Assembly: GCA_009103225.1 (NCBI GenBank)
Contig: RHPI01000977.1
Coordinates: 68,478 to 101,186 of the forward strand
Origin: Chlorokybus atmophyticus
Taxonomy: Eukaryota > Plantae > Mesostigma and Chlorokybus algae
Length of the DNA stretch: 32,709 nt
Direction of reading: 5' to 3'
The notes beneath the pieces were generated by a model. It saw nothing but the letters and a program-made list of their open reading frames with translations. It did not search any database and was not told the origin of the DNA. This document shows positions 422 through 24,017 of the stretch, piece after piece. The position numbers were made by a program, and so were the translations under genes. Positions within the stretch are counted from its first letter, which is position 1. Each line of letters opens with the position of its first letter.

Positions 422-1000
422 TCATGAGTTCCCATCGATGGCATTCAATTCGTCCAATGCGCGTTGTGTTGAAGATGGTGCAGCAGTTTTGTTATGTCTC
501 TCATACTGCAGCTCCAAGAACGTGTAGTACTCTGTCCGATTGTCTGCCTCAAGGTAATGTCGATTGCCAACAGGCCACTGCTTCCACAGCTCGAGCCGAT
601 AGTAGTTGGCAATGTCAATCGGCTCAACCATCAGGCGGAAAGTGTCGCCTCTTGCACACCAGAGATTGGACTTGTTGAAAAAGAAAGCAGGCAACATGCC
701 TTCCATGTAACGATTGTATGCTGAACGCCAGAAGTCCCGTAGAACCCTGTCATGTCAGGTTGGTCACCGCACGATGTGGAGGTCATACCAGTACTTAGCA
801 AGCCGTAAACTGCATTGAACTCAAACTGCAATGCATGTCGTCTGACCTGCATGCGTGTTTAACTGATTTCAAGCGCTCTGCTTGCGAGCTGTCATCACCG
901 TCACGATATGCTCTGAAGTCGGCGTAGTAGTCCGCAGAAGTCTGCGCAAAGGCTTGTATCGTTTCCATGGCAGCTTGTACCTCATTGCGCAACTTGTCAG
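422..1000 (-). other. EDS1/PAD4-type EP-like domain of copy 1
   Basis: AAMETIQAFAQTSADYYADFRAY...HACR|VLRDFWRSAYNRYMEGMLPAFFFNKSNLWCARGDTFRLMVEPIDIANYYR...HYLEADNRTEYY is colinear with the recalled PAD4 segment SMARIEWY...GYYDFFKRY...RIRLAKFW...LPFDF...W...YQLLAEPLDIANFYK...HYLEGNRPKRY. EPIDIANY is at 625-602. Confidence 0.8.
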
Positions 1001-1021
1001 TAAATTCTGTTTCATGTTTTC

Positions 1022-1337
1022 GCTGCTCGGCAATACGCGAACCGCCCACTGTCGGTGATTCCAAAGCTGCAAGGGTAAATGCATTGAGATTACGCGTGTC
1101 ATGTGGTAGGTCAACCCTGCATGTCAGATGCCAATCAGGCCGCAATGCAAACCTGGGCTGCATGGGCTGCATGAAGGGCGGCTTCTGCTGCTCGGTGATA
1201 CGCGAACCGCCCACTGTCGGTGACTCTGAAGCGCTGCAAAGGTAAATACACTGAGACTACGCATGTCATGTGGTAGATCAACACTGCACGCTAGATGCCA
1301 ATCAGGCCGCAATGCAAACCTGGGCTGCATGAAGGGC
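1022..1337. repeat. Tandem duplication, 2 copies, period 165 bp, each carrying an 86-nt intron copy
   Basis: The unit gctgctcgg..atacgcgaaccgcccactgtcggtga...gcaatgcaaacctgggctgcatg starts at ~1022 and ~1187. Intron copies are at 1319-1234 and 1152-1067. Confidence 0.9.
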
Positions 1338-2110
1338 TGAACACTTCCCAAGTGTTTGACGAGGGTGTCGTACCCAACCCAGGTTCCCTATTGCACGCAG
1401 AACCAGAAGACCCGCGGAATTACTTAAGCACACGTCATTTAAAACTATTTTGACTAGGTGCATGCTGCAAGGTCTCGCTCGTTCATTGAGAAGTGTGCAC
1501 AGCTTGGAGCAAATGCACTACACTCTTTGTAGTGTTTGAAACTTGCCTGCTGATCGCCAAGGGTAAAGTAGTTAAAATTTCCGGATCTGTGCAGGTACGT
1601 GCTTTCTGTCTCGAGGGGCCTGGAAGACGACTGGAACCAACCAGCCAGAGCGGTTCTGCTCTTCGTAGACCTTGGTTAGTATGTTCGTGTACTCGTCGTG
1701 CGTTCCTGCTCCCAATCTGTCAGCTGCAGTCGGCGTTTTCAGTGAAACCGTTCGTAATGCTCGTCACAAGCAACGATCACCTGCAATGTCACGAGTACAA
1801 CCAGCAAACCGATCAATGCATGGCTGTTGTGCAGGCGTGCCTGCTGACGGCATGAGATGCGAGAAGTTGGGATTGTCTGATGACGGCGACCACGCGCAAG
1901 GTGTTCTACACTTTGGAGACGATGTGACAACAAGTACCTTTGTGCCATCGTTTGAACATTTGACCAATAAGAATCGGCCATGACTGGTTTCCAATTTTGT
2001 AGTCGACAATGACGTCTATATTGTCTTGTTGCAGTTGCTCAGCAAGCCTCCGCACACGCTCTGCATGATGCTTGTCAAACTGGCAGTAGCTGATAAACAC
2101 AGTCAACTTG
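1320..2110 (-). other. SEFIR domain of copy 1 (three exons)
   Basis: TVFISYCQFDKHHAERVRRLAEQLQQDNIDVIVDY...SWP...|VIVACDEHYERF...GAGTHDEYTNILTKVYEEQNRSGWLVPVVF...VPAQIRKFNYFTL...|WVGYDTLVKHL resembles the recalled prokaryotic SEFIR consensus (VFISYS.DS..H...V..LA..L...GIDV..D; V..VC...Y..R; G.G...E; K.IPV.F; Y..L; GY..L...L). Confidence 0.75.
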
Positions 2111-2268
2111 GCCTCTGACGCCGCGGACGCTGCCTTTGTAGCCTCTTGTCCCTGTCCGCTATGTGCCACAGCACATGCAAATAACCATAAGCATGGTACC
2201 TGTAGTACAACACTTGCCGCACATGGCATGTGTGCATGATTTGCAACGAAAGCTATAGCAAAACTTAC

Positions 2269-3524
2269 GCAATAGCAGCATGGTTGACAGCCGCTGCCGC
2301 CTCCACCTCCGCCTTCGTCTCCCGCAGGTGCTGCTGCAGCACAGCAAAAACAGCAGGATCCAACATACTGAAAGATTTTGGCAGTGCCTTCAAGTGGGAG
2401 CACCCGTCCAGTTTCAGCTTTCGCAGTGCAGAGAGCTTGCCAAAGGACTCCGGCAGCACCGCCAAACTGTCGCACCAGCTTAGGTCCAGCTCACGCAAAG
2501 CAGCGAGCTTGCTGAAGGACTCTCCCAGCACTGCCAAGCGGTCGCACGCGCTCAGATTCAGCGTTTGCAGATTGTTCAATTCGCCGAGGGACTCCCGCAG
2601 TGCCTCTAGGCTACCGCAATAGCTCAAGTCAAGCGTTTGCAGGGCAACGAGACTACCAAAGGACTCCGGCAGCTCCGCCAAACTGTTGCAATTGGTCAGG
2701 TCCAGCATCTGCAGGGCAGTGAGTTTGCCAAAGTACTTTGGCAATGCCGCCAATCTTTCGCAACTTCTCAGGTCCAGCGTTTGCAGCATAGCGAGGTTGC
2801 CAAAGGATTCCGGCAGCTTCACCAAGCTGAGGCTATTGCTCAGGTCTAGCGTTTGCAGCATAGCGAGGTTGCCAAAGGACTCCGGCAGCTTCGCCAAGCT
2901 GTTGCACTTGCTCAGGTCCAGCATTTACAGGGCAGGTTGCCAAAGGACTCCGGCAGTGCCGCCATGCTGCCGCAATAGCTCAAGTCAAGCGTTTGCAGGG
3001 CCACGAGACTACCAAAGGACTTCGGCAGCTCCTCCAAGCTGAGGCTTTACCTTTAAGTCCAAGTCCTGAAGGTGCATGAGATCTCCTACAGACTCGGGTA
3101 GCTTGTGCAAACCGGTTCTAGAGAAAACTAGAGTCTGTAGCATAGCGAGCCCGCCAAGCGCTTCAGGCACATTCATCAGAGGTTCACAGCCCCGCAGCAC
3201 CAGGATTTGCAGCGCCTTGAGGTTTCCAATGGACTCAGTCGCCACCATTGAGACATCAACATGAACGGTTTTTTCTACAATTAGAATCACTAATGTAGTG
3301 CACGCAGCGGCATTATACAAGAAACTGCTCAAGGCGGAACAGCGTGGACGTCTCCACTCGAGATAGACCAGCTCTCTACGGACCCTATTGGGAGCGTGAA
3401 GTGTGCCATCCCAATCAGTTGTGCCAAGGTCTAGCATGCGGAGGCGAGGCATGAAGGCCATGCCACGTAATGTTTCGCTCCAGTTGAGTCCAGCCCAGGA
3501 CACAGTCTCGGCTTGTTCAGAGCC
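2269..3524 (-). other. Leucine-rich repeat region of copy 1
   Basis: About ten 24-aa repeats of the type LQTLDLSxCxSLxxLPESFGxL (ORFs 2265..2924 and 3009..3530), typical of TNL LRRs. Confidence 0.93.
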
Positions 3525-3711
3525 CTGCATACAACAACAGCATGCCTAAGATCAGCAGTTCTCACGCGCTCACTTCCAACAGCCATGCTGTCACATACTC
3601 TTGAAACACCGTGGGTTGCACGTTTTTGCTGGACGCATGCATGCAACCTTCACAAGCCAGTCAAAAGGACATGAGATGAAGGAACCAAGCTGGAGCGTGG
3701 CATACATGCAC

Positions 3712-4983
3712 CTCTTGAAGTAATGTGCTTGATTCCTTTGGCAACCAGATGTGCTTGGGCGGGTTGGCTCGACTGGCAATCATTCGCCCCATGTCGCGAA
3801 GTTGGCCATGTACCAAAAAGCAGATATTGCCTTGTGCACCCAATGAGAATGGCTTGTACTGGTCTTGTCTCCATACCAAGCGAATAAGGGACAATTCCAC
3901 CAGGGTATTCACTTATAGTGCCGCGCCCTTGCCCCACGCTGGAAGCAGAAACTTTTCATTTTTCCCAAATGCGAAGCAGCAGATGTCCAGAAACACTCGC
4001 TGATAAGTGGGCTCTAGGTAATTGTAGCTGAGCTCGAGCGTTTTCCACAACCGGTTATCCTTGGTACCTTCAAGCCCCTCTGCCTTTTGCAATTGATCCA
4101 GTGCGTCTTTCCAAAACTGCACATCACTGTTGCTGCTGCGCTTGTGAAGAAAGGATCCCACGACCTCGAGCGCGAGTGGCAGGCCTTGACACGCCTGGAT
4201 AATATCGTTGGCGATTGGCTCCAACTTCACAGGCACGGTAAGCAATATGCCAGGTTCAGTGAAGGCATAATTGTTGAACAGTTCTCTAGCCGGCTGATCG
4301 TCGAGCAGCAGCACCTCCTCCACCAATGTATGCTTCGCATGCCCCTTCAATAACTGGTGATTACAGAGGTCACCAGCACACGACTGCCTAACAACACGAT
4401 ATTGAGTCAGTCGTGTAGTGTCAGCCTTATTGTGTCAGTCTCACTGTGTAGGCAATGATCCACTGGTAATGTGCCTTACCGGTACCCAGCAGAGGGCTGT
4501 CTCCCCAAAAATTGCAACAACCGAGGAGGGCTTCTTTCTGATCCTCGCTCCAGACGTCATCAACAAAAAGCAGCACCTTCCGCCCTTGCAAGCGGTTCTT
4601 GAGAATTGCCTTTCCTTCATGAATGGAGGTCAATGCCTCTACAGGCTCACTCCCCAGCTTTTTGAAGCATTTGTTGTTGCAGCTGTACCAGCTTCCCGTT
4701 CTCTTTACATGCATCTTTTTCGACCGCTACAATGCAGCAGCTGCCTGGGAATTTGCTGTACAGGCTGTTGTAAACTGCTATTGCAAGTGCAGTCTTTCCG
4801 ATACCGCCAATGCCATGAAGACCCAGCATGATGACCTTGCTTCCAGCGGCAGCAGCATTCAACTTGTTGAGTACAGCTTCAACGCGCCTGTCAATGTCCA
4901 CTGGATGTTTGGCGACTTCCAAGCGGGGGGGTAGCCTTCTCAGCACGCCTGACACCACTGCATCTACTAAAGCAGTCCTGGTA
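3712..4983 (-). other. NB-ARC domain of copy 1
   Basis: P-loop GLHGIGGIGKT (~4792-4815), kinase-2 LLFVDDVW (~4549-4575), RNBS-B GSRVLVTS across the 4480/4387 splice, GLPLAL (~4168-4185), LELSY..L...QRVFLDICCF, and MHD-equivalent VHGQLRDMGR (~3790-3815). Confidence 0.93.
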
Positions 4984-5070
4984 CTGCCAACAAAGAGCAG
5001 ATGTTGAAAACATTGCCGCAATCATGATGACAACGGCATCACAACACGAACCAGTGACAACCCAACTCAC

Positions 5071-5661
5071 GGTTATTGATTGACCCTCCAGCCCGGTCTG
5101 TTGAACGCCTCCTCTACCGCCGTGCGATATTCAAGTTGATTTTGGACGTATAGGGTCTCACCGCGCTGGCATGCGCTGAAAACACACAACATGCTGGTCA
5201 TGATGGAAATCCTGCTGATTGCTGGCGAGTCTAGGAGAAAAGGTAAACTATACTGCCAGTACAGTGTACCCACCTGTGAATACTTTCCAGGATTATGGCT
5301 TTGAGATCGTCAAAGTCATCATAGAAGATAGGCATGATTTGATGTTTCCTGGACTCTCCAACATAATGCGCAGCTCCTCTAGGCAGTAGCAGGATTTCCC
5401 GTATCGACGAGAAAGGACAGGCATCTTGATGCGAGCGGACCGCACATTGGCAATGATGACATCCCAAGCTCCGTTGGTTTCCCCGGGCTGCAAGCTGAGC
5501 TCGTCCACGAAGCAGGTGATTCCAACTCTGTCAAGCATGCGATGCAGATAGTCAACAAGATTGTTCTTGACGTCAGGCCCTCTATGGCTCAGGAAAACGT
5601 CGCAGGGAGAGTGAGGGATAGTCTTTGACAGCGGCATATTGTCTCCGTCTGCAACACGCAA
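5071..5661 (-). other. TIR domain of copy 1
   Basis: DVFLSHRGPDVKNNLVDYLHRMLDRVGITCFVDELSLQPG...PVLSRRYGKSCYCLEEL...IMPIFYD matches plant TIR motifs (DVFLSHRG.D, SxWCLxEL, PIFY). The catalytic Glu position (CLEEL) is retained. Confidence 0.92.
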
Positions 5662-8165: not shown

Positions 8166-8166
8166 N
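8071..8166 (+). repeat. Poly-C run (95 C) ending in an N
   Basis: Seen directly. The terminal N suggests a contig join, so the length is unreliable. It lies at the position homologous to the poly-G near 18714 and 19124. Confidence 0.95.
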
Positions 8167-8259
8167 ATTCTTTGATAGGAGTTGGGCGCACTGCACCCAT
8201 TGTAAGGCTGGCCTGCACTGCGCTTGGCTGAGCAGCACAACCAGAAGCGCTTGCTTGAG

Positions 8260-8985
8260 ATGGACCGATTGGTGATTCGGAGGCTGCCTGCAGTGCTAGC
8301 TGCTGCTACATCCATTGTTACTGGTGCCGGCTACTGGAACCACACATATCTCAATTTGGACGCTCCTTATGATGCTGCTATGGTGTAAGTTCAACTACAG
8401 CTTTCCTTGTAAAGCAAGCAGAGCATTCCTGTTGCGACAAAATGCTGCACCATGCTCATAAGATTTTGCATGTGCTGCGGCAAGTAGCGGGCAGGGACGA
8501 GAGGCAACAGGGGCACTGTCCGCGACGCCAGCGGCAATATTGACAGCAATCATCAGCTGCTGCCAGTTTGACAACCAAGACAAAGAGCGCGGAGACTTGC
8601 CGAGCAACTGCAACAAGACAACATAGACGTCATCGTGAACTTCAAGAACCAGTACAAGTCATGGCCGGCTTTCATTGCAGATGCTGCCGGCACAAAGGTA
8701 GCACTTGTCACATTATTACTGGTGGTGAACACCTTGCGCATGGTTGCTGTCATCAACAAACCCCAACTTCTGGCATCTTATGTAGTAAACAGGCACGTCT
8801 GCATGATAGCGATGCATGCTGTGATTTGCAAATCGCAATTGTTCTCATGATGCTTTAGGTGATCGTAGCCGTGTGATGAGCATTATGAGAGATTTTAATT
8901 CAGGAGCCGACCGCAGCTGATGCATTGGGGGCGGGGATGCACGACTACTACACAACGTACTGAACAAGGTTTATGAGAAGCTGAG
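8260..8985 (+). pseudogene. Decayed signal-anchor-SEFIR gene (paralog of 16716-18563), no EP part found
   Basis: Exon 1 MDRLVIRRLPAVLAAATSIVTGAGYWNHTYL...|gtaagt is homologous to MGGLASLRLHAVLAAAAAIVAVAGYWKHTHL. It is followed by ISCCQFD...EQLQQDNIDVIVNFKNQYKSWPAFI...GTK|VIVA.CDEHYERF...GAG.HDYY...NKVYEK with several frameshifts. Homology ends at ~8985. Confidence 0.85.
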
Positions 8986-9710
8986 GTAGTTGGTTCTAGT
9001 TGTTATGTTTTGTAAACAAATGCTTCTACACATGCAGACTTGCCTACCACTCTAGACACTCCAGACACTCTAGACATATGTACACCGGTTGTGTAGCGCT
9101 TCATGCTCAACTATAGGCTTTCCAGTGGCTCCTTGCAAGCAAAGCATCATCACACCAGCACAGCAAGCACACGCACAGCCATCAGCACAAGACTCTATGA
9201 CACGCACTCTTACACCCACACGGTCACAGACACGCTCACTACCAACACATGGTGCATTAAGTACGAGAAAGTTTTGTCAGGCATCCTTGGACTTATGTGC
9301 ATAACAAAGGGCAGCACTTGGTCAGCAGGTGCACCTGCTGTGCACCTGCTCACCAAATGACTGCTTGCTGCAACATGCTTTGCATGTACTTGTCGCCAAG
9401 GCATGACATGACAGATCATCTTCAGCTATCTTTGTCGCAATCACTAAGCTGGAACATATTCACACAATCTATTAATTACCTCAGCTCTGACGTTTGCCCC
9501 ACCCTTATCCACACACCGTTAAATGGCATATTATTCGGATGCCAATGACCATCATGCTGTACACGCATATTGGGTTGCATTATATGCATGCACACGAGCA
9601 GTCGATGTGCATCTCATATAAGTATCTACGTGTTGAAACTGTTCGCAGATAAAGGCTACTATGTCTCCTCACTGCCTCGCAGATTGGCAAGTGCGAGGTG
9701 GATTCAACAG

Positions 9711-10412
9711 TCAGAGAGATAGGATTACTACCCAAATGAGCCTCATCCTCCTTAACAGCTTGCGAAGTGACGTTGATGTTCCCGCTTTCTCATCAGAGAG
9801 CCGATGAGCCTCCTGCCTGAGGTCATCATCAGGCTCCCGGGCCCCTCTCACCCCAGCAGTGACGAGCTCCTCTAGTGCGTTGTCGATTGAGCTCTTATTC
9901 CTCTCAGGGTACGCATTGCGGTATGCCTGCTCCAGCAGGTAATAACGCCGCGGCCGCACAACAGCCTCAGCAACCGAGAGACGAAGGTAATGCTTGCCGT
10001 TGGAGGCATAAAAATTCGCACCCTTTTGAGAATACCAGTTGGCAATGTCGATGGGCTCCACCAGCAACCGGCGAGCCAGTTGCTTGTGGAAGAAAGAATG
10101 TCCTCTGGGATGGAACCGCGCTCGTACTGCGTTGTAACCCAATCCCAAAAGTTTTTTCAGTTTACCCCGAGCTCTCTCAATCTGTGGTGGCCGGTTCTTT
10201 TTGAAGCCAACATAGTAGTCCTGTTCGTCCTGGTACTGCTTGATAACATCCATCGCGTCATCAACACTATCGTACTTCATGGACAGCTCTGCTGTCTGCC
10301 TGTTCCGAGCATCTTCCCTGTTGCGCACAAACGCGTAGAGTCCATACAGGAACCCGAGCAAGCCAACCAGACAGGCGAGGATGCTGGGCCAGGGAGGCGC
10401 TTGTTCAGCCAT
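9711..10412 (-). CDS. Intronless 233-aa protein: N-terminal TM helix plus EP-like domain plus hydrophobic C-terminal tail
   Basis: Open frame from ATG 10412 (MAEQAPP) to the stop at 9711. Hydrophobic SILACLVGLLGFLYGLYAFV, then DAMDVIKQY...DYYVGFKK...RARGKL...RRLLVEPIDIANWYS...KHYL...RPRRYYLLEQAY (EPIDIA at 10058-10041). Ends RRMRLIWVVILSL. An upstream in-frame alternative start exists at 10487. Confidence 0.85.
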   Translation of the reverse strand: MAEQAPPWPSILACLVGLLGFLYGLYAFVRNREDARNRQTAELSMKYDSVDDAMDVIKQYQDEQDYYVGFKKNRPPQIERARGKLKKLLGLGYNAVRARFHPRGHSFFHKQLARRLLVEPIDIANWYSQKGANFYASNGKHYLRLSVAEAVVRPRRYYLLEQAYRNAYPERNKSSIDNALEELVTAGVRGAREPDDDLRQEAHRLSDEKAGTSTSLRKLLRRMRLIWVVILSL

Positions 10413-13400
10413 ATGTAGGTTGTAATGAGCCCCACGCGTGCATGCGCTCTCGTGCCCCTTTGCACAGCAGACTTTAGCACTGCGCATGCCAGCGAGTGTT
10501 AGTGTTGGTGTTCAACTACTGTCCAACCGATCCTATTGCCGTGGAGCGGAGATATTGCAACGCCCCTCAGCAGTGCGAAACGCTCCTGCCAACCAAACAG
10601 CATGCCAGACTAACTCAATGTGTGCATGCTGGCGAGCCAGATCAGCTTGAAGGGGTAAGCTGCCCTAAATCAGCACCAGCCCAGCCAAGCTGCGGCGACT
10701 CGGACTGGCAATAGTTTCATGCTACTCAGTTCAGCTGACGAGCAGAAACCATGACGCTACTCAGTTCAGCTGGCGAGAATGGTGGCGGCAACAGCTCTCG
10801 GACATGTTCACATCATGGCTTTACGTGAACCGCGCTAAACAACGTGAAATTGAAAGTCAGAAGCTAAAATGTTCTCTACAGCGGCTAGGATGGATCAAGC
10901 AATGTCAGCATTACAATGCTACGCCGGTATGCATGCATGTAAGCCAAGATTGAGCAAGCTTCGCAAGCTGTCACTGGCACTGGTGGATACACAAACAGGC
11001 AGCGCTAGCACGGACGGCTTCTTGCACCTTTTGGCTAACAAGCCGCACCAACCTCTTACGAGGTTAGGCTTCAGGCTTCCTTGCTCCAGCAAGCTCTGGA
11101 GATTGGGGACAGCTTCAGAGCCATGACACTGCGTCCAACTGACCCAGCCAGCAACCTCGGCGACCTACAGCAGCGCTCCTTTCTTCAGGCGCAAGCAGGG
11201 GTTGCCCTTACCCTTAGCCCTTCAGTGCAACGGCAGCGTCGCCGCTCACCCCCTCCTCCCTCCCGCCCCACAGCGTCAACACTGGCTCAGTCTAACGCGA
11301 GAACTCCGTCTGAGAGGTAAGATAAAGTCTTGCGGCAAGCTTGACTTTCTCTCATCGGCTACAGGTAACAAGATTCGTGTCACACGAAACATGTCGCCGG
11401 GTCATCAAGCACAAAATGGTCATAAAACAATGTCGCCTTCTGACAAAGTCTTTTTCACAAAGGTTGGACTGACAAGCATGGGCTCTGTTGGTTGGGTTTT
11501 ATTGACCGAGCCGTGAGGCGTAAGTTGGTGTTGGTGCGAGCTATGCTACAGCCGCAACCTGAATGCCTGAATGCCGAGCTAGAGGTGGGCGGAGGAGCCT
11601 GCAGGGCTGAGCTGAACCGTCATGTAGGCCGCTCTGCTGCTGGGGATAAGTGGTGCAAGCCGCCCACTACGTGACAGCGACACCCCCCTTTTCCCGCCAG
11701 CCGGCTGCGCAGAGCACCAGCTAGCATTGGCCGCAAACATGCACGATGCCCTATGCCTTCTGCTGCTGTTCTCAAGTTTGGTGTAGGCTGCGCGTGTTTG
11801 CTGCAGCTATGACAAGCTGCTTGCTTGGGCATTACTGTTCAAACCAGGATTGAATGAGTCTAGCAGAAGTTGCGTACATACTACTTCAATGTAGTATGAT
11901 ACTACATCGAAGTGCTTACGTTGCAATGACTGCAGTTAGCATAGCAAGCTGCAGCTAATAAGGAGGTTTATTGGTGGCTCAGCAGCAAGGGTTCCTAAGC
12001 CACTTTCGTACCTGCAGACAAGGCTCTAGAAGTCATAGATCCTCGTGACGCTGCGAGGTACGTCTGCAGGTACGAGTGGCTCAATAGATTGAACTAGCAG
12101 TAACTGAAAGTAGCATTGACGCGCGAAGAAGTGACTAGCCCTCGTGATATAACTCTTGCACGAAGCTGTCATGTCACTGCTTGCATTCAGGATACGCTGC
12201 TGACAACGTGACAGCAGCCAGCTCGTTGCTGTCATGTTCTCCATCACCATCATGACAGCCCTGCATTCCGCGGCCAGCATACAGTTTTCGCATGTCTTCC
12301 ATGCTGCGTTTCGGTATCTGCTGAACGGTGCACAATAGCATCATACCTGGATCTTCAGAAATGCTGCACCCTTGAACACAATATAGAAGCAATGGTTAAC
12401 ATGACTTCAAGCCTTACCATTCATACATGCAGTCCCGCGCATACATCTCTGCACGTTCTCCCCATGCATACACTACTGTCTCTCTCTCACTGACATCTGT
12501 ACAGACTTGCACGCAGTCATGATCATGCACTTTCGCTAACACACCCATCCCACAACCACCTACATTCTTACACCCCCACACACATATATTCGTTTAATCT
12601 CACACTCCCAGACAACTGAAAGCTTGAGCTGATGTCTTTCAACAAGCTTTACAAAAGGGGAAGTTCTAATGGTGTACAACACCTGGATGCTTGCATGAAG
12701 AAGTGCATACGTGCAGTGTGGGGGAATGAGAGCATGAGACGCAGGATTTGAAAAGCGGCGGAGTGGGCGGCCAACCTGCGCTGCAGCGGTGCTGGTAAGC
12801 CTGGTAAGCCGAGGTGAAGGCAGCCAGCCGCCAGGCAACGACGATGACACCTACTTCATACACGGCGAAAACGACAAGGCTGCCGTCGCCCCTCCCCCGG
12901 CCAGCACGTCCGGCTAAGTCAATCTCACTTGCCTTGACTTTTTCCTCCTCGCTACACTAGTACAGACTTATGGGGTGGAGGAGAAGAATTGGTGTTAGTT
13001 GCAATGTTTGCGTGCGATGGACGATTGCGGGTTGGCGGATGGACAACGACCGAGGTTGGGCGAAGCCTAACAGATGAATGTCGATGGACGGCTGGCTGAT
13101 TGGGTGGTTCGAAACTTCTGGTCGCCACTGTTGTGTCTGTCAATTGAGCTGGAGCATGTCAACAACCGCAAAGCGAGCTCAGCCTCAGCCTGCTTGCATG
13201 TTAAAGCCAATCTCGAATGCATGCCTCACGAGCACACAAGCACAGTCACACGCACACGGGCGCACACACGCATCCCCCCGTCCCCCCTTTTATCCATAAG
13301 CCAACGTGACCTCTGTGCGCATGCTTACCTTGCCTGGTTGCAGTACCAGTTGGTGTTTTGTTGTCGCTAGTGGCGTTGGGAGAGAGATGGCTGCGGTAGT

Positions 13401-15650: not shown

Positions 15651-15712
15651 GCAGCTGATTGAGTGTCAAGTTAGACCAGACTACCCTAATGGTTCAGGTT
15701 TATGCTGGAGAG

Positions 15713-16334
<622 letters not shown>

Positions 16335-16715
16335 NATGCGCACGCAGCAAGCTCCAGCATACACTCGCACACGCACACAGCCGAGATCACCGTCGTCCAC
16401 ATGCACGCAGCTACAGACCTCTTCACATGCATGTCCGCACGTATATGCGCACACAGAGAGACACACAGTGACGCACACACATGCAGGTATGCGCTCAGGC
16501 TTGAGTATGAGCACATCATGTCATGCACATTTTGTATAAATGCTTAGGCCCGTTTAGACATACACATGCAGACTCAAGTGGACACATATGCAGGCTCGCA
16601 AGGCTCTTCCAGCGTTCAATCTAATATAACCTGTTTTCTCAAGCTTAATTTGAGGTTTCGTCTCGTGACAAGGTAGAGTACACCTTGTCAAAAGGCGAGA
16701 GGAAGGCACCTCAAC

Positions 16716-18563
16716 TCATGAGCTCCCTTCGATGGCGTTCATCTCGTCCAATGCGTGTTGTGTTGAAGACGGTGCATCACTTTTGTTATGTTTCTCATAC
16801 TGCAGCTCTAAGAACGTGTAGTACTCTGGTCGGTTGTCCGCCTCAAGGTAATGTCGATTGCCGACAGGCCATTGCTTCCACAGCTCAAGCCGGTAGTAGT
16901 TGGCAATGTCAATTGGCTCAACCATGAGTCGAAAACTGTTGCCTCTCGCACACCAAACATTGGACTTGCTAAAAAAGTCAGCAGGCAACATGCCATCCAT
17001 GTGCCATTTGTACGTAGTACGCCAGAAGTCCCGTAGATACCTGTCAGGTTGGTGGGGGGGTTACATCAGTACTTAGCAGTTTTTCACTTTGCAATGAACT
17101 TGAACTTGAACTTGCAACTGCAATGCATGTGACCTGACCTGCGTGCGTCCTCGACTTTTTTCAAGCGCTCTGCTTGCGGGCTGCCATCACCGCCACGATA
17201 TGCTCTGAAGTCAGCATAGTAGTCTGCAGAGGTTTGCGCAAAGGCTTGTATCGTGTCCATGGCATCTTGTGCCTCATTGCGCCACTTGTCAGTAAACTCA
17301 GTTTCATGTCTCCGCTGCTCGACGACACTCAAAACGCCCATTCTCGGTGACTCTGAAGCGCTGCAAAAGTAAACGCACTGAGACTTCACTTGTTATGTGG
17401 TATCAATATGTCGTATCAACACTGCATGTCAGACGCCAATCAGGCCGCAGTGCAAACCTCTGTGGCATGGGCTGCACAAAGGCCGGAACATTTTTCAAGT
17501 GCTTGACGAGGGTGTCGTACCCAACCCAGGGAGCCTATTGCACGAGGATAGGAACAGAAGACCCGCGGACTAATTAAAGCAGCACATCATGGAATACTAC
17601 GTTGAATAGGTGCATGCTGCAAGGTCTAGCTCGTGCATCAAGGAGTGTGCACAGCTTGGAGCACCTCACTCTTTGAACTTACCTGATGACCACCAAGGGT
17701 GAAGTAGCTAAATTTCCGGATCTGCGCAGGAACATCCTTTCTTGCTCCAGGAGGCCGGAAAACGACTGGTACCAACCACCCGGAAAGGTTCTGCTCCTCA
17801 TAAACCTTGTTCAGTATGTTCGTGTACTCGTCGTGCGTCCCCGCGCCCATCTTAACAGCTGCGGTCGGCTGCTTTAATGAAAACCGCTCATAATGCTCAT
17901 CACAGGCCACGATCACCTGAAGCGTCATGAGAACACCCTCAAGCCAAGCATGCCTTGCTGTGATGCAGACGAGCCTGCTTTTTGACAATGTTGAAAGCAA
18001 ATTGCGGGAATTGTTGGTGACAGCGACCATGCGCAAGATTCACGACCAGGAATGATGTGACAACCGGTACCTTGGTGCCATTGTTCAACATCTGCCCAAC
18101 AAAAGCCGGCCAGGACTGATACGTATTTTTGTAGTCGACAATGACTTCTATATTGTTTTGTTGCAGTTGCTCGGCAAGCCTCCTCACACGCTCTGCGTGA
18201 TGCTTGTCGAACTGGCAGTAGCTGATAAACACAGTCATCTTGGCCTCTGGTGCCGCGGACAGTTCCCCTGTAGCCGCTCCTCCCTGTCCGCTATGTGCCA
18301 CAGCACATGCAAAGTACCATAAGCATGGTACAGCATCGGCAAGAAAGAAGCTTGTGCATGCTTTGCATAGAAAGCTGTAACAAAACTTACGCAACAGCAG
18401 CGTTGTTGACAGCAGCTGAGTCTTTTTCCTTATACGTATGCTTATCCTGGTGTTGTAAACTACCCGGGTGGAGATGCGTGTGCTTCCAGTAGCCAGCGAC
18501 AGCGACAATGGCTGCAGCCGCAGCCAGCACTGCATGCAGCCTCAGAGATGCCAGCCCGCCCAT
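16716..18563 (-). CDS. Intact 6-exon signal-anchor-SEFIR-EP protein, 416 aa
   Basis: Exons 18563-18391, 18290-18071, 17916-17683, 17534-17458, 17360-17139, 17040-16716 (173+220+234+77+222+325 = 1251 nt). All introns are GT-AG, phases are compatible and there is no internal stop. Protein: MGGLASLRLHAVLAAAAAIVAVAGYWK...TVFISYCQFDKHHAERV...GAGTHDEY...WLVPVVF...GYDTLVKHL...DYYADFRAY...RRYLRDFW...LPADFF...FRLMVEPIDIANYYR...HYLEADNRPEYY...EGSS*. An assembly gap lies upstream, so a further 5' exon cannot be excluded. Confidence 0.88.
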
Positions 18564-18652: not shown

Positions 18653-19136
18653 TGAGTTCATTAGCCATGCCCAAACCCACCAAGCGCTATACAGCTGCGG
18701 AAGACCAAAACGAGGGGGGGGGGGGGGGGGGGGNNNNNNNNNNNNNNNNNNNNNNNNNNNNNNNNNNNNNNNNNNNNNNNNNNNNNNNNNNNNNNNNNNN
18801 NNNNNNNNNNNNNNNNNNNNNNNNNNNNNNNNNNNNNNNNNNNNNNNNNNNNNNNNNNNNNNNNNNNNNNNNNNNNNNNNNNNNNNNNNNNNNNNNNNNN
18901 NNNNNNNNNNNNNNNNNNNNNNNNNNNNNNNNNNNNNNNNNNNNNNNNNNNNNNNNNNNNNNNNNNNNNNNNNNNNNNNNNNNNNNNNNNNNNNNNNNNN
19001 NNNNNNNNNNNNNNNNNNNNNNNNNNNNNNNNNNNNNNNNNNNNNNNNNNNNNNNNNNNNNNTGAGTTCATTAGCCATGCCCAAACCCACCAAGCGCTAT
19101 ACAGCTGCGGAAGACCAAAACGAGGGGGGGGGGGGG
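18653..19136. other. Assembly gap (N 18734-19062) flanked by an identical ~70-bp sequence ending in poly-G
   Basis: tgagttcattagccatgcccaaacc...gaccaaaacgagggg occurs at 18653-18733 and again at 19063-19136, typical of unmerged contig ends. Confidence 0.85.
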
Positions 19137-21120
19137 ACAACTGCTGTCAGCTGAGTAAGAATTACCATGAATGTCACGGTAATTTCTGCAGTTCAGAAAC
19201 TTGCACGACTTGCACGACAGCAGCTGCACAAAACGAAGCCAGTACTGTTACTGCCGCCAGTAAGGCCCAAATACCATTGACAACAGAACTTCTCATGCTT
19301 AGGTGCTACAGGATGCTTGCCCTAAGTTACACGGACGCTGCTGCACACAAGCAGCTATATAACTGAGTGGCTGCAAGGGGCACATGTTCATGGCGTTGTG
19401 AAGTTTTGTGTGTCTGTGCGCACAAGTGTGTGCATGCGTATGCATACATACACAGGTGCATGCATGCATGCACGCACACGCACAGGCGCGCGTCAGCATG
19501 TGTGCTGTACGTACAGATGCTGTTGCGCGAGCTGTGAATTTGGTTGAGCTAGAGAAGCTTTCTGGAGGGCGGTCAAGCATGAAAAAGTGGGGCAACCCGG
19601 GGGGTGGGGGTAAGTGCGTGGGCACAACAAATTCACAAAGACGGTAGCAACGGCATTGCAGCGCACCTGCACAAGAAGGCCGAACTCTAAGCTATGCTTG
19701 CGGAGGCAGTAGCCATCTCCGTCAGACTGCGGCGTCAGAGTTACTGCTAACCAGCGCCTCCCAGCATGGCACTGACGGGCTGACAAAAGCTGGCAACCTG
19801 ATGCGCTTTGCGCCCTCCCCCTCCCGGCAAGCCCCTTCCAGCCGCCGGCGGCGCAGCCGCTACACCGCCTAGCAGTCCGTGCCGCCAGTACACAATACTG
19901 GCATATCTACCACATGCAATACTGTATGACCATAACAACAACTTATACTCTTGACAAGGAATGAGGATGCCAGGAGTCCTGGCCGAGCGCACGCATGACA
20001 TGAGAATCTCACATTTCATGACGAGATAGGGTTGTCTAAGAAGCCCAATGTTGGTTTGATCGTGTCAACTCAAGTGCATTTTACATGCTTACACCCTGTT
20101 AGGGGTTACACGTAAGCTGGACGCGCGGTACCTGACTCTGCGTACGGCTTGGGAGCGGACGGCATGGACATGGACATGGACCGGAGCAAGCGGGCGGGAA
20201 GGGCGGGGTGGGGCGAAGGGGCGACGCCTCCTTCCTACGGACAAGATAAGGTGGGACAAGCGTATAAGCCAAGCGCAGCTGCATTCCCCGCACCGGGCGA
20301 AGGTGCGTTGCCGTCACGCCGTCCAACTTTGTGTGGTTGTGTGCGCTGCTTGCACATATAAAAGCAGCATGCCATATGCAGAACAGAAATGTAATGCTTG
20401 ACTTGCATGGCTCGCTCGGTGCAAGCTGGCGGTGCTTGCCGTGGTCGGCAGCGCCATGGCAGGGAATCGACTTGGTTACAGATTCCGAGCGCATGCGTCA
20501 GTGAAGTCACTTCACTGGATGTCAAACATCTAGTTTATTGTCTGCTAGGCCGCAGCCTCATTAGCACCAAGTCGGTACGAGTGGCCGTTTACGAGACATT
20601 GCGTGTAGATTGAAACTCGCTTGTAGCCGTGTACAGTTCTTGGTTCTTGGCTACACTTACTCTTGCTTGGTGCATTGTTGAGAAAGGGTTGCGCACGCAA
20701 TTGCTGTGGCTAGAGACTGCATGCGTAGGTAGCACAAGCACACGCTTCCTGTCATCCGTGTGCGGTCCATTGCATTCCGCTGGAAAGCACCGTGCAGTTA
20801 TATCTAAACATCGGCAGCCTATACATGTGGTTGCGTGCGTGTCATGGTTGCGCACAGGCATTGTGAGCTCAAGTATTATGTATTGCTGCAGGCTACCAAG
20901 GGGGAGCTTGCTTTGATGTCTCAATGTTTGCTTCAGTTGCAAATCAGGACGGTACGCCGGGGAACAACACATACGCGCCTTGATTGTGGTGCTGCATATG
21001 CTGCGCATGTGTTTCGCGCTATTCTTTGCAGCTTATTGTGCAAGAAGGTTATAAGCCATCAAGTGCCATCTACTACAGTCACCATGAGTCCACTGACAAA
21101 CTTACATATTGCACATCACA

Positions 21121-24017
21121 GGCAGATGGACTCCATCAAAGACCATCCCTCACCCTGGCAGTGATATTTTCTTGAGCCATAGAGGGGACGTCAAGAGGAA
21201 CTTTGTTTATTTCCTAAGCCACCTTCTTAAGCAAGCAAGTGAGCATGACCTGCTTCGTGGATGAACTTAGCTTGCAGCCTGGGGACAAAGCCTGGTTTGT
21301 GATTACCGGCAATGTATGGTCCGCTCGTATAAAAATGCATGTTCTATTGTGTAACTATGGGGACTCTTGGTACTGCTTTGAAGAGCTGCGAATTATGATG
21401 GAGGATGCAGAAAACATCGTCAAGCCCATCTTCTTTGATGATAACTTTGACAGCCTGCAAGCCATATTTTAGGAAAGTAAAAGCAGGTGAGTAGATTTGT
21501 ATACATACACACTGTCGCTCATTAAGGTAGACATGTTCCTGGTTGCAAACATGTTTCGTGCTTGCAGCGCATGCCTCAATGGTAAAGAGGAATACATCCA
21601 AAACAAATCGGCATACTGTGATGCGCTTGATATAGCATTTACAACAACGGTTCTTCATGCCTTGGCTCCGCATGCTAGACCTTGCTACAACTGATTGGGA
21701 TGGCACACTTCCTGTTCCCGACAGGGTCCGTTCAGAGCTGGTCTATCTCGAGTGGAAACGCCCGCGCTGTTCAGCCTTGAGCAATTTCTTGTGTAATGCC
21801 GCTGCATGCCAAAACTTGGTCGTCCTAATCATAGAACAAGCCGTCCATGATCATGCCTCAATGACAGTGGCTAAGTCCATAGGAAACCTCAAGGTGCTGC
21901 AAATTCTGGTGCTGCGCGGTTTTTATGATTTGAACGAGCTGCCTGAAGCGCTTGACGGGCTCACTATGCTATAGACTTTAGTTCTCTTCAGAACTGGTTT
22001 GCACATGCTACCCGAGTCTGTTGGAGGTCTCATGCATCTACAAAAACTGGACCTAGCATTAGCCTCAACTTGACGGCGCTGCCGGAGTCTGCAAATGCTG
22101 AACCTGAGCAAATGCAACAGCTTGGCGGCGCTGCCAAAGTCTTTTGGCAAACCGGCTGCCGTACAGACGCTGGACCTGAGCAAGTGCGACAGCTTGATGG
22201 CACTGCCGGAGTCCTTCGGCAAGTTGGACAACTTAGAAAACGCTGAACCAGAGCGCGTGCGACTACTTGGCGGTACTGCAGGAGTCCTTCAGCAAGCTCG
22301 CTGCTCTGCGTGAGCTAGACCCAAGCTGGTGCGCGAGTTTGGTGGCGCTGTCGAAGTCTTTTTGCAAGCTCACTGCTCTGCACAATCTGAAGCTAAACGG
22401 GTACTTCCATCTGAAGGCGCTGCCAGAAATCTTCAGTGCGCTGCATCCTGCTGTTGTTGCTTTGCTACAGCACCAGCAGGAGGCGAAGGCAAAGGCCTCG
22501 GCCGCTATCGATAATGCTGCTACTGCTGTGCAGCAGCACCAGCAGGACGCGGAGGCCAAGGCCGAGGCCGCTGTCAACCATGCTGCTACTTCGTAAGTTT
22601 AGCATGGCTGTCTTCGCAAACCATGCGCAAACTCTTGTGCGGCAAATGCTTTACCATGCTTATAACAATTTGCGTGTGCTGCGGCATATAGCGGACAGGG
22701 AAAAGAGGCGAAGTTGACAGTATTCATCAGCTACTGCCCCTTTGACAAGCATCACGCAAAGCGTGTGTGGAGGCTTGTTGAGCAACTGCAACAAGATAAA
22801 GTACCCGTCATTGTCGACTACAAATCTGGATACCAATCATGGCCAGCTTTTATTGGGCAGATGTTTAAGGATGGCACAAAGGTACCAATGGTCACATCAT
22901 CTCTGATAGTGTAGAACATCTTGCGCATCGTGGCTGTCATCATCCATTCCCATCTTACATAGATTATATAGTAAGCAAGCACGTGAGCATGACAGACATG
23001 CATGCTTGGTTTCCGGTTGTTAACATAACGTTTCAGGTGGTGGTGGTTTGTGATGAGCATTATGAGCGATTTTCATCAAAACAGCCACCCGCAGCCGATA
23101 GGATGGGCGCGGGGACGCACGACGAGTACACGAACATACGAAACAAGGTTTATGAGGAGCAAAATCTTTCCGGGTGGTTGGTTCCAGTCATCTTCCGCCC
23201 CCCCGGAGAAAGAAAGCACGTACCAACGCTCATTCGAAATTTGGCTACTTCACCCTTGGCGATCAGCATGCAAGTTTAAAGGGGGAGGTGCATTTGCTTC
23301 ACGCTATGCAAACCTTTATGCACGAGCAAGACTTTGTAGCATGCGCTCAGTCTTTCTGAATGGTCTTACATGACGTCTGCGTTAGTAACTCCGTGGCTCT
23401 TTCGATGCCATCCTCATGCAATGGTAACCCTGGGCTGGGTACGACACCCTCATCAAGCACTTGGGAAGTGTGCCGGCCTTCATGCCCATGTCACACAGGT
23501 TTGCATTGCAGCCCACTTGACCTGCAGTGTTGACCTACCATGACATCCATAGTCCTAGAGCATTGTATATTGCAACGCTTCAGAGCCACAGAGAGTGGTC
23601 GAATCGCGTATTGCCACGCAGCAAAGCCATGAAACAGAGTTTGCTAACATGTGGCGCAAGGAGGTATAAGACGCCATGGACACATAACAGCCTTTTTGCT
23701 GACCTCGGCAGACTTCTACGCTGACTTCAGAGCATATTATGGCAGTGATGGCAGCCCGCAAGCAAAGCGCTTGAGAAGGGTCGACCGTGCACGGAGGTTA
23801 AGATTTGCGCAATTGAACGCTTGCTCGGTACTGTTATGACCTCCCCACCAACCTAACAGGGTTACACGGGACTTCTGGCGTATAGCATACAAGTGGTACA
23901 TGGATGGCATGTTGCCTATTTTTTCAGCAAGTCCAGTGTTTGGTTTGTGAGAGGCAACACGACGCGACTCATGGTTGAGCCCATTGACATTGCCAATTGG
24001 GCTCGAGCTGTGGAAGA
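21121..24017 (+). pseudogene. TIR-(NB-ARC deleted)-LRR-SEFIR-EP(truncated) relic, copy 2 of the fusion NLR
   Basis: TIR DIFLSHRG.DVK...TCFVDELSLQPG...SWYCFEEL...KPIFFDD. TIR exon 2 runs out of frame directly into MPWLRMLDLATTDWDG at ~21650. Shortened LRRs, SEFIR exons (22700-23490), and EP up to LMVEPIDIANW (23977-24000). Many stops and frameshifts. Confidence 0.9.

Follow-up and report, generated by a model that had tools for sequence, protein, structure and literature searches.

Receptors of the nucleotide-binding leucine-rich repeat class (NLRs) that carry an integrated domain (NLR-IDs) are exemplified by Arabidopsis RRS1, which carries a WRKY domain at its C terminus. The EP domains of the EDS1 family serve in seed plants as receptors of signals made by TIR domains, and they are regarded in the literature as a seed-plant invention, robust EP homology being placed only in seed plants (PMC9806590; bioRxiv 10.64898/2026.05.20.726525) and green algae being credited just with "short EP-like sequences" (bioRxiv 10.64898/2026.05.20.726525). 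Because of this view of EP, the question of TIR-NLR signalling in algae and bryophytes has been left open. Here, we analysed a stretch of 32,709 nucleotides from Chlorokybus atmophyticus (assembly GCA_009103225.1, contig RHPI01000977.1, positions 68,478 to 101,186 of the forward strand; hereafter the window), with a focus on a locus at positions 5661-422 of its minus strand. This locus is very probably what remains, after recent inactivation, of a formerly functional fusion gene, in which a TIR-NB-ARC-LRR receptor (TNL) was joined to a SEFIR-EP module (TNL::SEFIR-EP). A self-comparison revealed multiple occurrences of the SEFIR-EP module within the window. We designated the locus under study as copy A (422-5661), and its relatives as copy B (16716-18563, minus strand), copy C (21082-24016, plus strand), copy D (8224-9000, plus strand), and gene E (9711-10487, minus strand).

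Along the minus strand of copy A, Pfam detected in succession a TIR domain (5293-5661, E 8e-11), an NB-ARC domain in three pieces, leucine-rich repeats in the LRR exon (LRR_14, E 1e-30), a weak TIR_2/SEFIR-like match in one exon, and an EDS1-type EP domain (EDS1_EP, 422-706, E 1.6e-8). The TNL motifs GIGKT, LLFVDDVW, GSRVLVTS(R), and GLPLAL were readable, and moss and liverwort NLRs aligned to the TNL part in tblastn searches. Copy A therefore contains what defines a TNL, namely a TIR domain, a central NB-ARC domain bearing the P-loop, RNBS-B, and GLPL motifs, and LRRs at the C terminus, arranged in the correct order, but not a continuous open frame across its exons. The initial annotation had proposed one gene encoding TIR-NB-ARC-LRR plus SEFIR plus EP in one chain. 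The domain order was borne out by Pfam, whereas the single chain was not, since the frame is broken repeatedly; translation from the first ATG stops within the TIR domain, and the SEFIR-EP part cannot be reached in frame. The introns of copy A are kept, and its splice sites are mostly intact. Copy A is thus a former TNL that is now an unprocessed pseudogene, and its architecture is NLR-ID-like. As in NLR-IDs, a complete TNL is followed, after the LRRs, by a module copied from a free-standing gene family with intact members in the same cluster. It differs from them in that the module consists of SEFIR and EP, that a bait function is putative, and that copy A is a pseudogene; furthermore, its integration point is visible in the DNA, the TNL using the first intron of the donor gene. 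EDS1, PAD4, and SAG101 have the EP-type helical domain in common with the proteins of this streptophyte alga. On the other hand, the Chlorokybus proteins have no class-3 lipase-like alpha/beta-hydrolase domain at their N terminus, and their EP domain is partnered with SEFIR and, at copy A, with a TNL. Since it has no lipase domain and its EP domain is partial, copy A is not a member of the EDS1 family.

The junction between the LRR and SEFIR exons was characterized at the nucleotide level. Two bases of an Ala codon close the LRR exon at 2269, the donor gtaagt occupies 2268-2263, the acceptor ag is found at 2160-2159, and the base at 2158 completes the codon. The in-phase splice proposed between 2269 and 2158 therefore uses canonical GT-AG borders and removes an intron of 110 nt (2159..2268, minus strand). 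In order to place the exon borders, the exon structure of copy B was set so as to reproduce exactly, residue for residue, the protein of the Joint Genome Institute (JGI) Chlat1 model Chrsp235S03603 (P0097), with all introns GT-AG, and was then projected onto copies A and C by a three-way alignment. The same projection reproduced the junction 847/746 in the EP part of copy A. The donor, acceptor, and phase of the junction intron were identical in copies A, B, and C, and this intron is spliced out in the JGI models P0001 and P0097, which have a transmembrane helix (TM) ahead of SEFIR-EP, and P0003 (Chrsp114S01646), giving the protein sequence ...AAVN(H/N)AA(I/V/T)A|GQG.... The fusion junction itself is common to three paralogous loci, namely copy A, copy C, and Chrsp114S01646. 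It had been argued that a second copy with the same junction speaks against an assembly join, and copy C indeed has the identical donor and acceptor. Furthermore, a single blastn high-scoring segment pair (HSP) between copies A and C spans the junction from the linker exon to the LRR (1180-2786 versus 23628-22089). These results indicate that the fusions are homologous, being neither independent joins nor an assembly artefact.

Copy B is an intact gene of six exons that encodes a membrane-anchored SEFIR-EP protein of 416 amino acids and is 77% identical to copy A. Its first exon encodes a signal-anchor-like hydrophobic helix followed by a short tail. The similarity between the LRR exon of copy A and exon 1 of copy B is confined to the donor-adjacent tail, where it is clear over approximately the last 26 nt and fainter over approximately 24 codons. 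The SEFIR-EP parts of copies A and C have no start exon of their own and retain just the last codons of exon 1 of copy B. Exons 2 to 6 of the Chlorokybus SEFIR-EP genes copy B and Chrsp103S01043 are homologous to the SEFIR-EP exons of copy A (81-87% nucleotide identity), with the same introns and domains; these genes are intact and have an N-terminal transmembrane exon in place of the TNL, whereas copy A is broken. In Chlorokybus, the family commonly occurs as free TM-EP or TM-SEFIR-EP proteins (P0001, P0097, P0005, P0008, and P0021). As judged from the sequences, the exon-1 tail and the intron in common show that the SEFIR-EP family was the source of the module. By a DNA rearrangement, the last LRR exon of a TNL would have come to continue in frame into the 3' end of the first exon of a membrane-anchored SEFIR-EP gene lying next to it. 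The TNL would thereby have lost its own 3' end and acquired intron 1 and exons 2 to 6 of the SEFIR-EP gene, the membrane anchor being dropped. The fused gene was then duplicated to give copy A, copy C, and the third copy on another scaffold, and, as judged from the sequences, selection retained the fused gene, presumably for a function, through most of its history before copy A gained approximately 11 frame-breaking lesions.

Copy C represents a decayed TIR-LRR-SEFIR-EP locus that is approximately 70% identical to copy A. Its sequence passes from TIR to LRR within approximately 160 nt (21493-21653), so that the NB-ARC region, which takes up approximately 1.8 kb in copy A, is entirely deleted. 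In addition, copy C has lost two acceptors, contains several indels, and ends in a truncated EP exon. The JGI model P0003, which lies on another scaffold, is an LRR-SEFIR-EP protein of 680 amino acids with a shortened SEFIR half and with neither TIR nor NB-ARC; it begins at a Met within the LRR exon. In both copy C and P0003, the LRR tail is duplicated in tandem and SEFIR exon 2 has lost 30 nt, and the two are therefore sister copies. A protein tree of the SEFIR-EP paralogues likewise placed copy C as sister to P0003 with 100/100 support.

It could be argued that there were always two genes here, a TNL ending at the TAA just past 2269 and a separate SEFIR-EP gene or fragment, the in-phase junction being incidental. 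If the donor is not used, the TAA at 2267-2265 indeed follows the last LRR codon immediately, and the start Met of P0003 inside the LRR exon makes an internal start conceivable. The only sequencing run labelled as RNA behaved as low-coverage DNA on copy A, yielding unspliced contigs with no splice joints. However, a separate SEFIR-EP gene at copies A and C would be without a start exon, and the donor, acceptor, and phase have been kept in three paralogous fusion loci. Furthermore, purifying selection acted on TIR as well as on SEFIR-EP once copies A and C had split, an event that postdates the fusion (see below). We consider it unlikely that copy A originated as two genes, and an intact ancestor would have encoded TIR-NB-ARC-LRR-SEFIR-EP as one chain.

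The approximately 11 frame-breaking lesions of copy A, which span the TIR to EP exons, were located by three-frame reading and by comparison with copy B, copy C, P0003, and bryophyte NLRs. Copy A was studied one exon at a time and by way of its intact sister, copy B. All of the exons described here are on the minus strand. Exon 1 (TIR, 5274..5637) starts with the ATG at 5637-5635 and has a frameshift near 5340-5333, where the three-frame reading switched from f0 to f2 and the tblastn HSPs of moss TNLs ended (5338-5350). Exon 2 (C-terminal part of TIR, 5071..5175) contains an in-frame TAA at 5075-5073, two codons ahead of its GTGAGT donor, and both its acceptor and donor are in phase with the stop-bearing frame. 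Exon 3 (NB-ARC with the P-loop GIGKT and the Walker B sequence LLFVDDVW, 4480..4983) has a frameshift in homopolymer runs near 4663-4652, and Pfam recognized NB-ARC in the pieces on both sides. Exon 4 (NB-ARC with RNBS-B, GLPL, and the winged helix, 3712..4387) lacks one base at 4364/4365 in the assembly and contains an in-frame TAA at 3915-3913, through which the tblastn HSPs of moss and liverwort NLRs passed in a single frame in the winged-helix part. Exon 5 (2269..3524) encodes the LRRs detected as LRR_14 and a tail ending in AAVNHAAI and the split Ala codon; it is approximately 63% identical to P0003 over the LRR part of this model. Its frame changes near 3056-3045 and again near 2935-2922, the second change involving 4 missing nucleotides and a TAA at 2927-2925.

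In the SEFIR-EP part, exon 6 (first half of the SEFIR/TIR_2-like domain, 1938..2158) is 85% identical in nucleotide sequence to exon 2 of copy B and carries a +1 insertion at 1954. Exon 7 (second half of SEFIR, 1547..1780), delimited by alignment with exon 3 of copy B, has lost one nucleotide after 1748, leading to TGA at 1741-1739, and has gained one at 1577, leading to TAA at 1574-1572; its donor has changed from GT to GC at 1546-1545, and this GC donor is shared with copy C. Exon 8 (linker, 1153..1387), which was also aligned to copy B, is broken by a 158-nt tandem duplication (1339-1182) of a segment that runs from the end of this exon across the intron into the start of the first EP exon. 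In a self-blastn, 1022-1164 matched 1187-1331 with 88% identity, corresponding to a tandem duplication of approximately 145 to 158 nt. Exon 9 (first EP helices, 847..1066), which was located by tblastn with P0097, is 2 nt shorter at the acceptor than exon 5 of copy B. Exon 10 (EP core with the motif EPIDIANYYR, 422..746, stop codon at 424-422) is free of lesions, showing 86.8% nucleotide identity to copy B and no indels.

Contigs from two public DNA runs with differing organism labels were aligned to copy A. No indel relative to the window was found by the read contigs over seven lesion sites (5340, 5075, 1954, 1748, 1577, 1546, and one edge of the duplication). The TIR frameshift was covered by contigs at 5314-5591 and 5145-5405, the TAA at 5075-5073 by a contig identical to the window at 4944-5151, the insertion at 1954 by a contig at 1851-2009, and the exon 7 lesions by contigs at 1635-1802, 1561-1725, and 1236-1599. 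Reads and window disagreed only after 4364, where both read sets have one additional base and the NB-ARC motif GSRVLVTSRNHQLL is thereby restored. What looks like a frameshift at 4364 is therefore an assembly error, a 1-nt omission that mimics a break of the RNBS-B frame. Since the read contigs differ from the window only at this position, the read-covered lesions are real. When the ancestral splice sites are used, the frame shifted by the insertion at 1954 meets a stop in the following exon, five codons from its start, and there is no alternative GT nearby. Copy A is unable to make the fusion protein.

The read data also bear on the possibility that copy A is a live single TIR-NB-ARC-LRR-SEFIR-EP gene, its breaks being assembly errors or being bypassed by splicing. 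The proven error at 4364 shows that a missing base can mimic a frameshift in this assembly, and the lesion near 4655 lies in homopolymer runs outside the read coverage. The last EP exon is undamaged, and the SEFIR-EP branch of copy A is as constrained as that of the intact copy (see below). On the other hand, both read sets match the window, free of indels, at the TIR frameshift, at the TAA at 5075, and at the three indels and stops in SEFIR. The insertion at 1954 is not bypassed by any nearby donor, and the 158-nt duplication and the GC donor constitute further damage. It is therefore very improbable that copy A is a live gene.

In order to estimate the selection history, the ratio of nonsynonymous to synonymous substitution rates (dN/dS, ω) was calculated by the Nei-Gojobori method for 309 SEFIR-EP codons common to copies A, B, and C (exons 2 to 6 of copy B), with three branches and 1000 bootstraps. 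The ω values were 0.20 for branch A (95% interval, 0.12-0.37), 0.19 for branch B (0.10-0.34), and 0.70 for branch C (0.44-1.25). None of the 1000 bootstraps of branch A reached 1. In the TNL part, ω between copies A and C was 0.18-0.31 for TIR and 0.63 for the first LRR block. Since copies A and C inherited the fusion from a common ancestor, branch A represents the fused gene over its entire length, whatever the position of the root. These results indicate that SEFIR-EP was under purifying selection while it was joined to the TNL. The five indels found in approximately 1.1 kb of coding sequence would correspond to neutral decay over the last tenth to fifth of the A branch, a back-of-envelope figure that assumes approximately one indel per ten substitutions and is compatible with the interval of ω. 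The sequence record thus indicates that copy A died recently.

These estimates are also pertinent to whether the fusion was dead on arrival, that is, a product of rearrangement that was duplicated only as junk DNA in an NLR cluster. All of the fusion copies read (A, C, and P0003) are damaged or shortened, and just one of the five family members in the window is undamaged. However, the upper 95% bound of ω in branch A is far from the neutral value, which no bootstrap attained, and the TIR domains of copies A and C diverged at a similarly low ω. An origin as junk DNA is therefore hardly probable.

Several observations weigh against the interpretation of copy A as a recently inactivated, formerly functional fusion gene. 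The ω of copy A equals that of intact copy B, which is surprising for a locus with so many lesions and agrees only with a recent inactivation, roughly within the final 10-20% of the branch. Such constraint could be mimicked by gene conversion from copy B, and the estimate comes from a simple method with three taxa. None of the listed read contigs reaches the lesions near 4655, 3913, and 2930 or the acceptor at 1066; these may be errors, and the assembly carries at least one proven indel error, namely that at 4364. The site near 3050 falls in a fully covered bin in which no indel was reported, and its contig is unlisted. As for the junction, splicing in copy A, past or present, is inferred from the paralogues and gene models. 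In addition, copy A, copy B, P0001, and the pairs (C, P0003) and (P0098, P0002) form a polytomy in the protein tree, which speaks neither for nor against a grouping of copy A with copy C and P0003; the shared origin of the fusions therefore rests on the continuous alignment of copies A and C through the junction.

The EP assignment made in the initial annotation held at both the sequence and the fold level. The last exon of copy A matched EDS1_EP (PF18117) with 34.9 bits (cut-off, 23.1), and 10 of its 11 matches to PDB sequences at E ≤ 1 were EDS1, PAD4, or SAG101 chains, centred on EP(L/I)DIANYY. A profile built from the alignment of the last EP exon (alignment A2) was run against 1.84 billion representative proteins at E ≤ 0.001 and matched 93 proteins, with the Chlorokybus family at the top. 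The next matches were short proteins of green algae (Myrmecia bisecta and Elliptochloris bilobata), to which UniProt gives the automatic name "EDS1 EP domain-containing", together with metagenome proteins, and these were followed by EDS1 homologues of Ginkgo. Copy B, whose protein contains EDS1_EP (7e-11, 42.7 bits) and SEFIR (2e-9), was used for structure prediction. Its AlphaFold2 model, based on an alignment of algal and metagenomic sequences only, had a predicted local distance difference test score (pLDDT) of 93-98 over residues ~245-416. In a Foldseek search of this model against the PDB, all of the 22 matches at E ≤ 0.001 were chains of the EDS1 family (EDS1, PAD4, and SAG101). The best E value was 9e-6, and the best alignments had a root-mean-square deviation of 2.4-3.3 Å over 151-181 columns with 19-27% identity. 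The predicted fold, together with the profile matches, makes the homology of the EP domain to that of the EDS1 family firm. Gene E was dropped as a structural query, being more divergent and partly out of frame.

The Chlorokybus EP domain is shorter than that of seed plants, matching Pfam positions ~6-122 of 211. No Lipase_3 match was found by Pfam in copy A, copy B, or any Chlorokybus family member, whereas the Ginkgo and Arabis matches have Lipase_3. The EP(L/I)DIANYY motif is invariant. The conserved ligand-pocket residues considered were D469, N472, Y473, K478, and R493 of EDS1 and R314, K379, K380, Y383, and F387 of PAD4. Of these, EDS1 Asp469, Asn472, and Tyr473 touch the phosphoribosyl moiety of pRib-ADP (bioRxiv 10.1101/2022.04.01.486681). 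The D-I-A-N-Y spacing in Chlorokybus fits these three residues. On the other hand, the ligand contacts of PAD4, Lys379, Lys380, Tyr383, and Phe387 (numbering checked against 7xey_B), are aligned to N, L, A, and T, respectively, and ligand binding therefore cannot be deduced. Two kinds of EP core were seen in a further alignment (A3): the SEFIR-linked copies have NRPEYY, and the TM-EP copies P0005, P0008, and P0021 have RP(R/E)RY. In the PAD4 alignment, the Arg of the TM-EP motif falls at PAD4 Arg420, a position that may correspond to EDS1 Arg493. By analogy with EDS1 and PAD4, the two kinds of core hint at two partner types.

The SEFIR assignment of copy A was examined in the same way. Exon 6, the sole matching piece, scored 20.4 bits against SEFIR (cut-off, 23), its E values being 1.6e-4 for TIR_2 and 6.8e-4 for SEFIR, both under the curated cut-offs. 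The intact sisters exceeded the SEFIR cut-off over positions 2-143 of 150 (41 bits for P0001 and 38 bits for P0097), and they also matched TIR_2 above the cut-off (profiles SEFIR PF08357 and TIR_2 PF13676). The profile scores of the sisters thus indicate that the family has a SEFIR domain and that copy A holds a broken copy of it. In the AlphaFold2 model of copy B, the SEFIR half had low confidence, and the second half of SEFIR was modelled poorly. In an Atlas language-model feature search, the SEFIR half came closest to clusters of bacterial SEFIR/TIR_2 proteins, with a score of 0.95 and 181 features in common. Unlike these bacterial proteins, the Chlorokybus version is eukaryotic, intron-split, and fused to EP; enzymatic activity is putative.

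Among the 93 matches of the EP profile, drawn from 1.84 billion representatives, no algal protein with both NB-ARC and EP was present. The only other match with both domains was KFK28610.1 of Arabis alpina (2011 amino acids), with the order lipase-EP, lipase-EP, TIR-NB-ARC-LRR. In contrast to copy A, it has full lipase-EP units ahead of the TNL, comes from a seed plant, and contains no SEFIR; it is likely that neighbouring genes were merged by annotation. An LRR-based search for unfused or full-length TNL relatives in Chlorokybus was dominated by generic LRR proteins and gave no useful match. A literature search returned no report of SEFIR-EP or TNL-EP fusions, nor of EP or SEFIR-EP modules integrated into an NLR.

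Other members of the family were found in the window and elsewhere. Copy D is a decayed fragment with an open reading frame (ORF) resembling the TM exon 1 and with pieces of SEFIR exons 2 and 3 in three frames with stops; it adjoins a poly-G/C tract and a single N at 8166. Gene E is an intronless, divergent TM-EP ORF of 258 amino acids. Compared with its paralogue P0005 (Chrsp114S01653), approximately 32 codons of gene E are in the wrong frame; the conserved "NFWDWVTTQYERGSIPEDI..." helix is found in another frame, between two compensating shifts, and the Pfam EP score is 2e-4 versus 7e-15 in P0005. Whether these shifts represent damage or two errors of the assembly, gene E is not cleanly intact. 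A (CT)n/(GA)n microsatellite of more than 600 nt (15700-16335), which ends at a single N (16335), lies directly downstream of copy B. A run of 329 N (18734-19062) lies directly upstream of copy B, so that its promoter region is incompletely assembled. The JGI model P0004 (Chrsp5S06985) on another scaffold encodes 640 amino acids with a TM helix, EP, a canonical TIR, the back half of SEFIR, and a second EP core. This arrangement indicates that EP and TIR-type domains were combined more than once in Chlorokybus. As a general point, the error at 4364 indicates that single-base frame breaks in this assembly need to be checked against reads before pseudogenes are called.

In the intact ancestor of copy A, activation of the NLR would have united the N-terminal TIR with the C-terminal SEFIR-EP module. 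Two models can be considered for the role of this module. In the first, it would be an integrated bait for effectors that target free SEFIR-EP proteins. In the second, it would be a built-in reader and relay, its EP domain sensing nucleotide signals from the TIR or SEFIR domains of the same oligomer. Because the module reproduces nearly all of a free gene except for the membrane anchor, we lean slightly, with low confidence, toward the bait model, which is also what the intact free SEFIR-EP copies in the same cluster fit.

In Chlorokybus, an EP domain that resembles those of EDS1, PAD4, and SAG101 at the fold level is coupled to a TIR-like SEFIR domain, and the match of copy B to the EDS1 family exceeds the short sequences so far granted to green algae. 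A SEFIR-EP module of this kind appears to have been captured by a TNL and retained there by selection, and the route of capture is preserved, with a gene of the donor family next door and the breakpoint inside an exon. Being dead, copy A is historical evidence rather than a reagent. It is possible, although doubtful, that the TNL-SEFIR-EP design was a working single-chain receptor that may still exist in an intact paralogue elsewhere in the genome. If this is the case, a TIR-type NLR and EP would have been coupled in cis in a streptophyte alga long before the EDS1 hub of seed plants, and this coupling would have needed neither a lipase domain nor a helper NLR. The EP module would then read the nucleotide signals of TIR or SEFIR, or would bait effectors that attack the free SEFIR-EP proteins.

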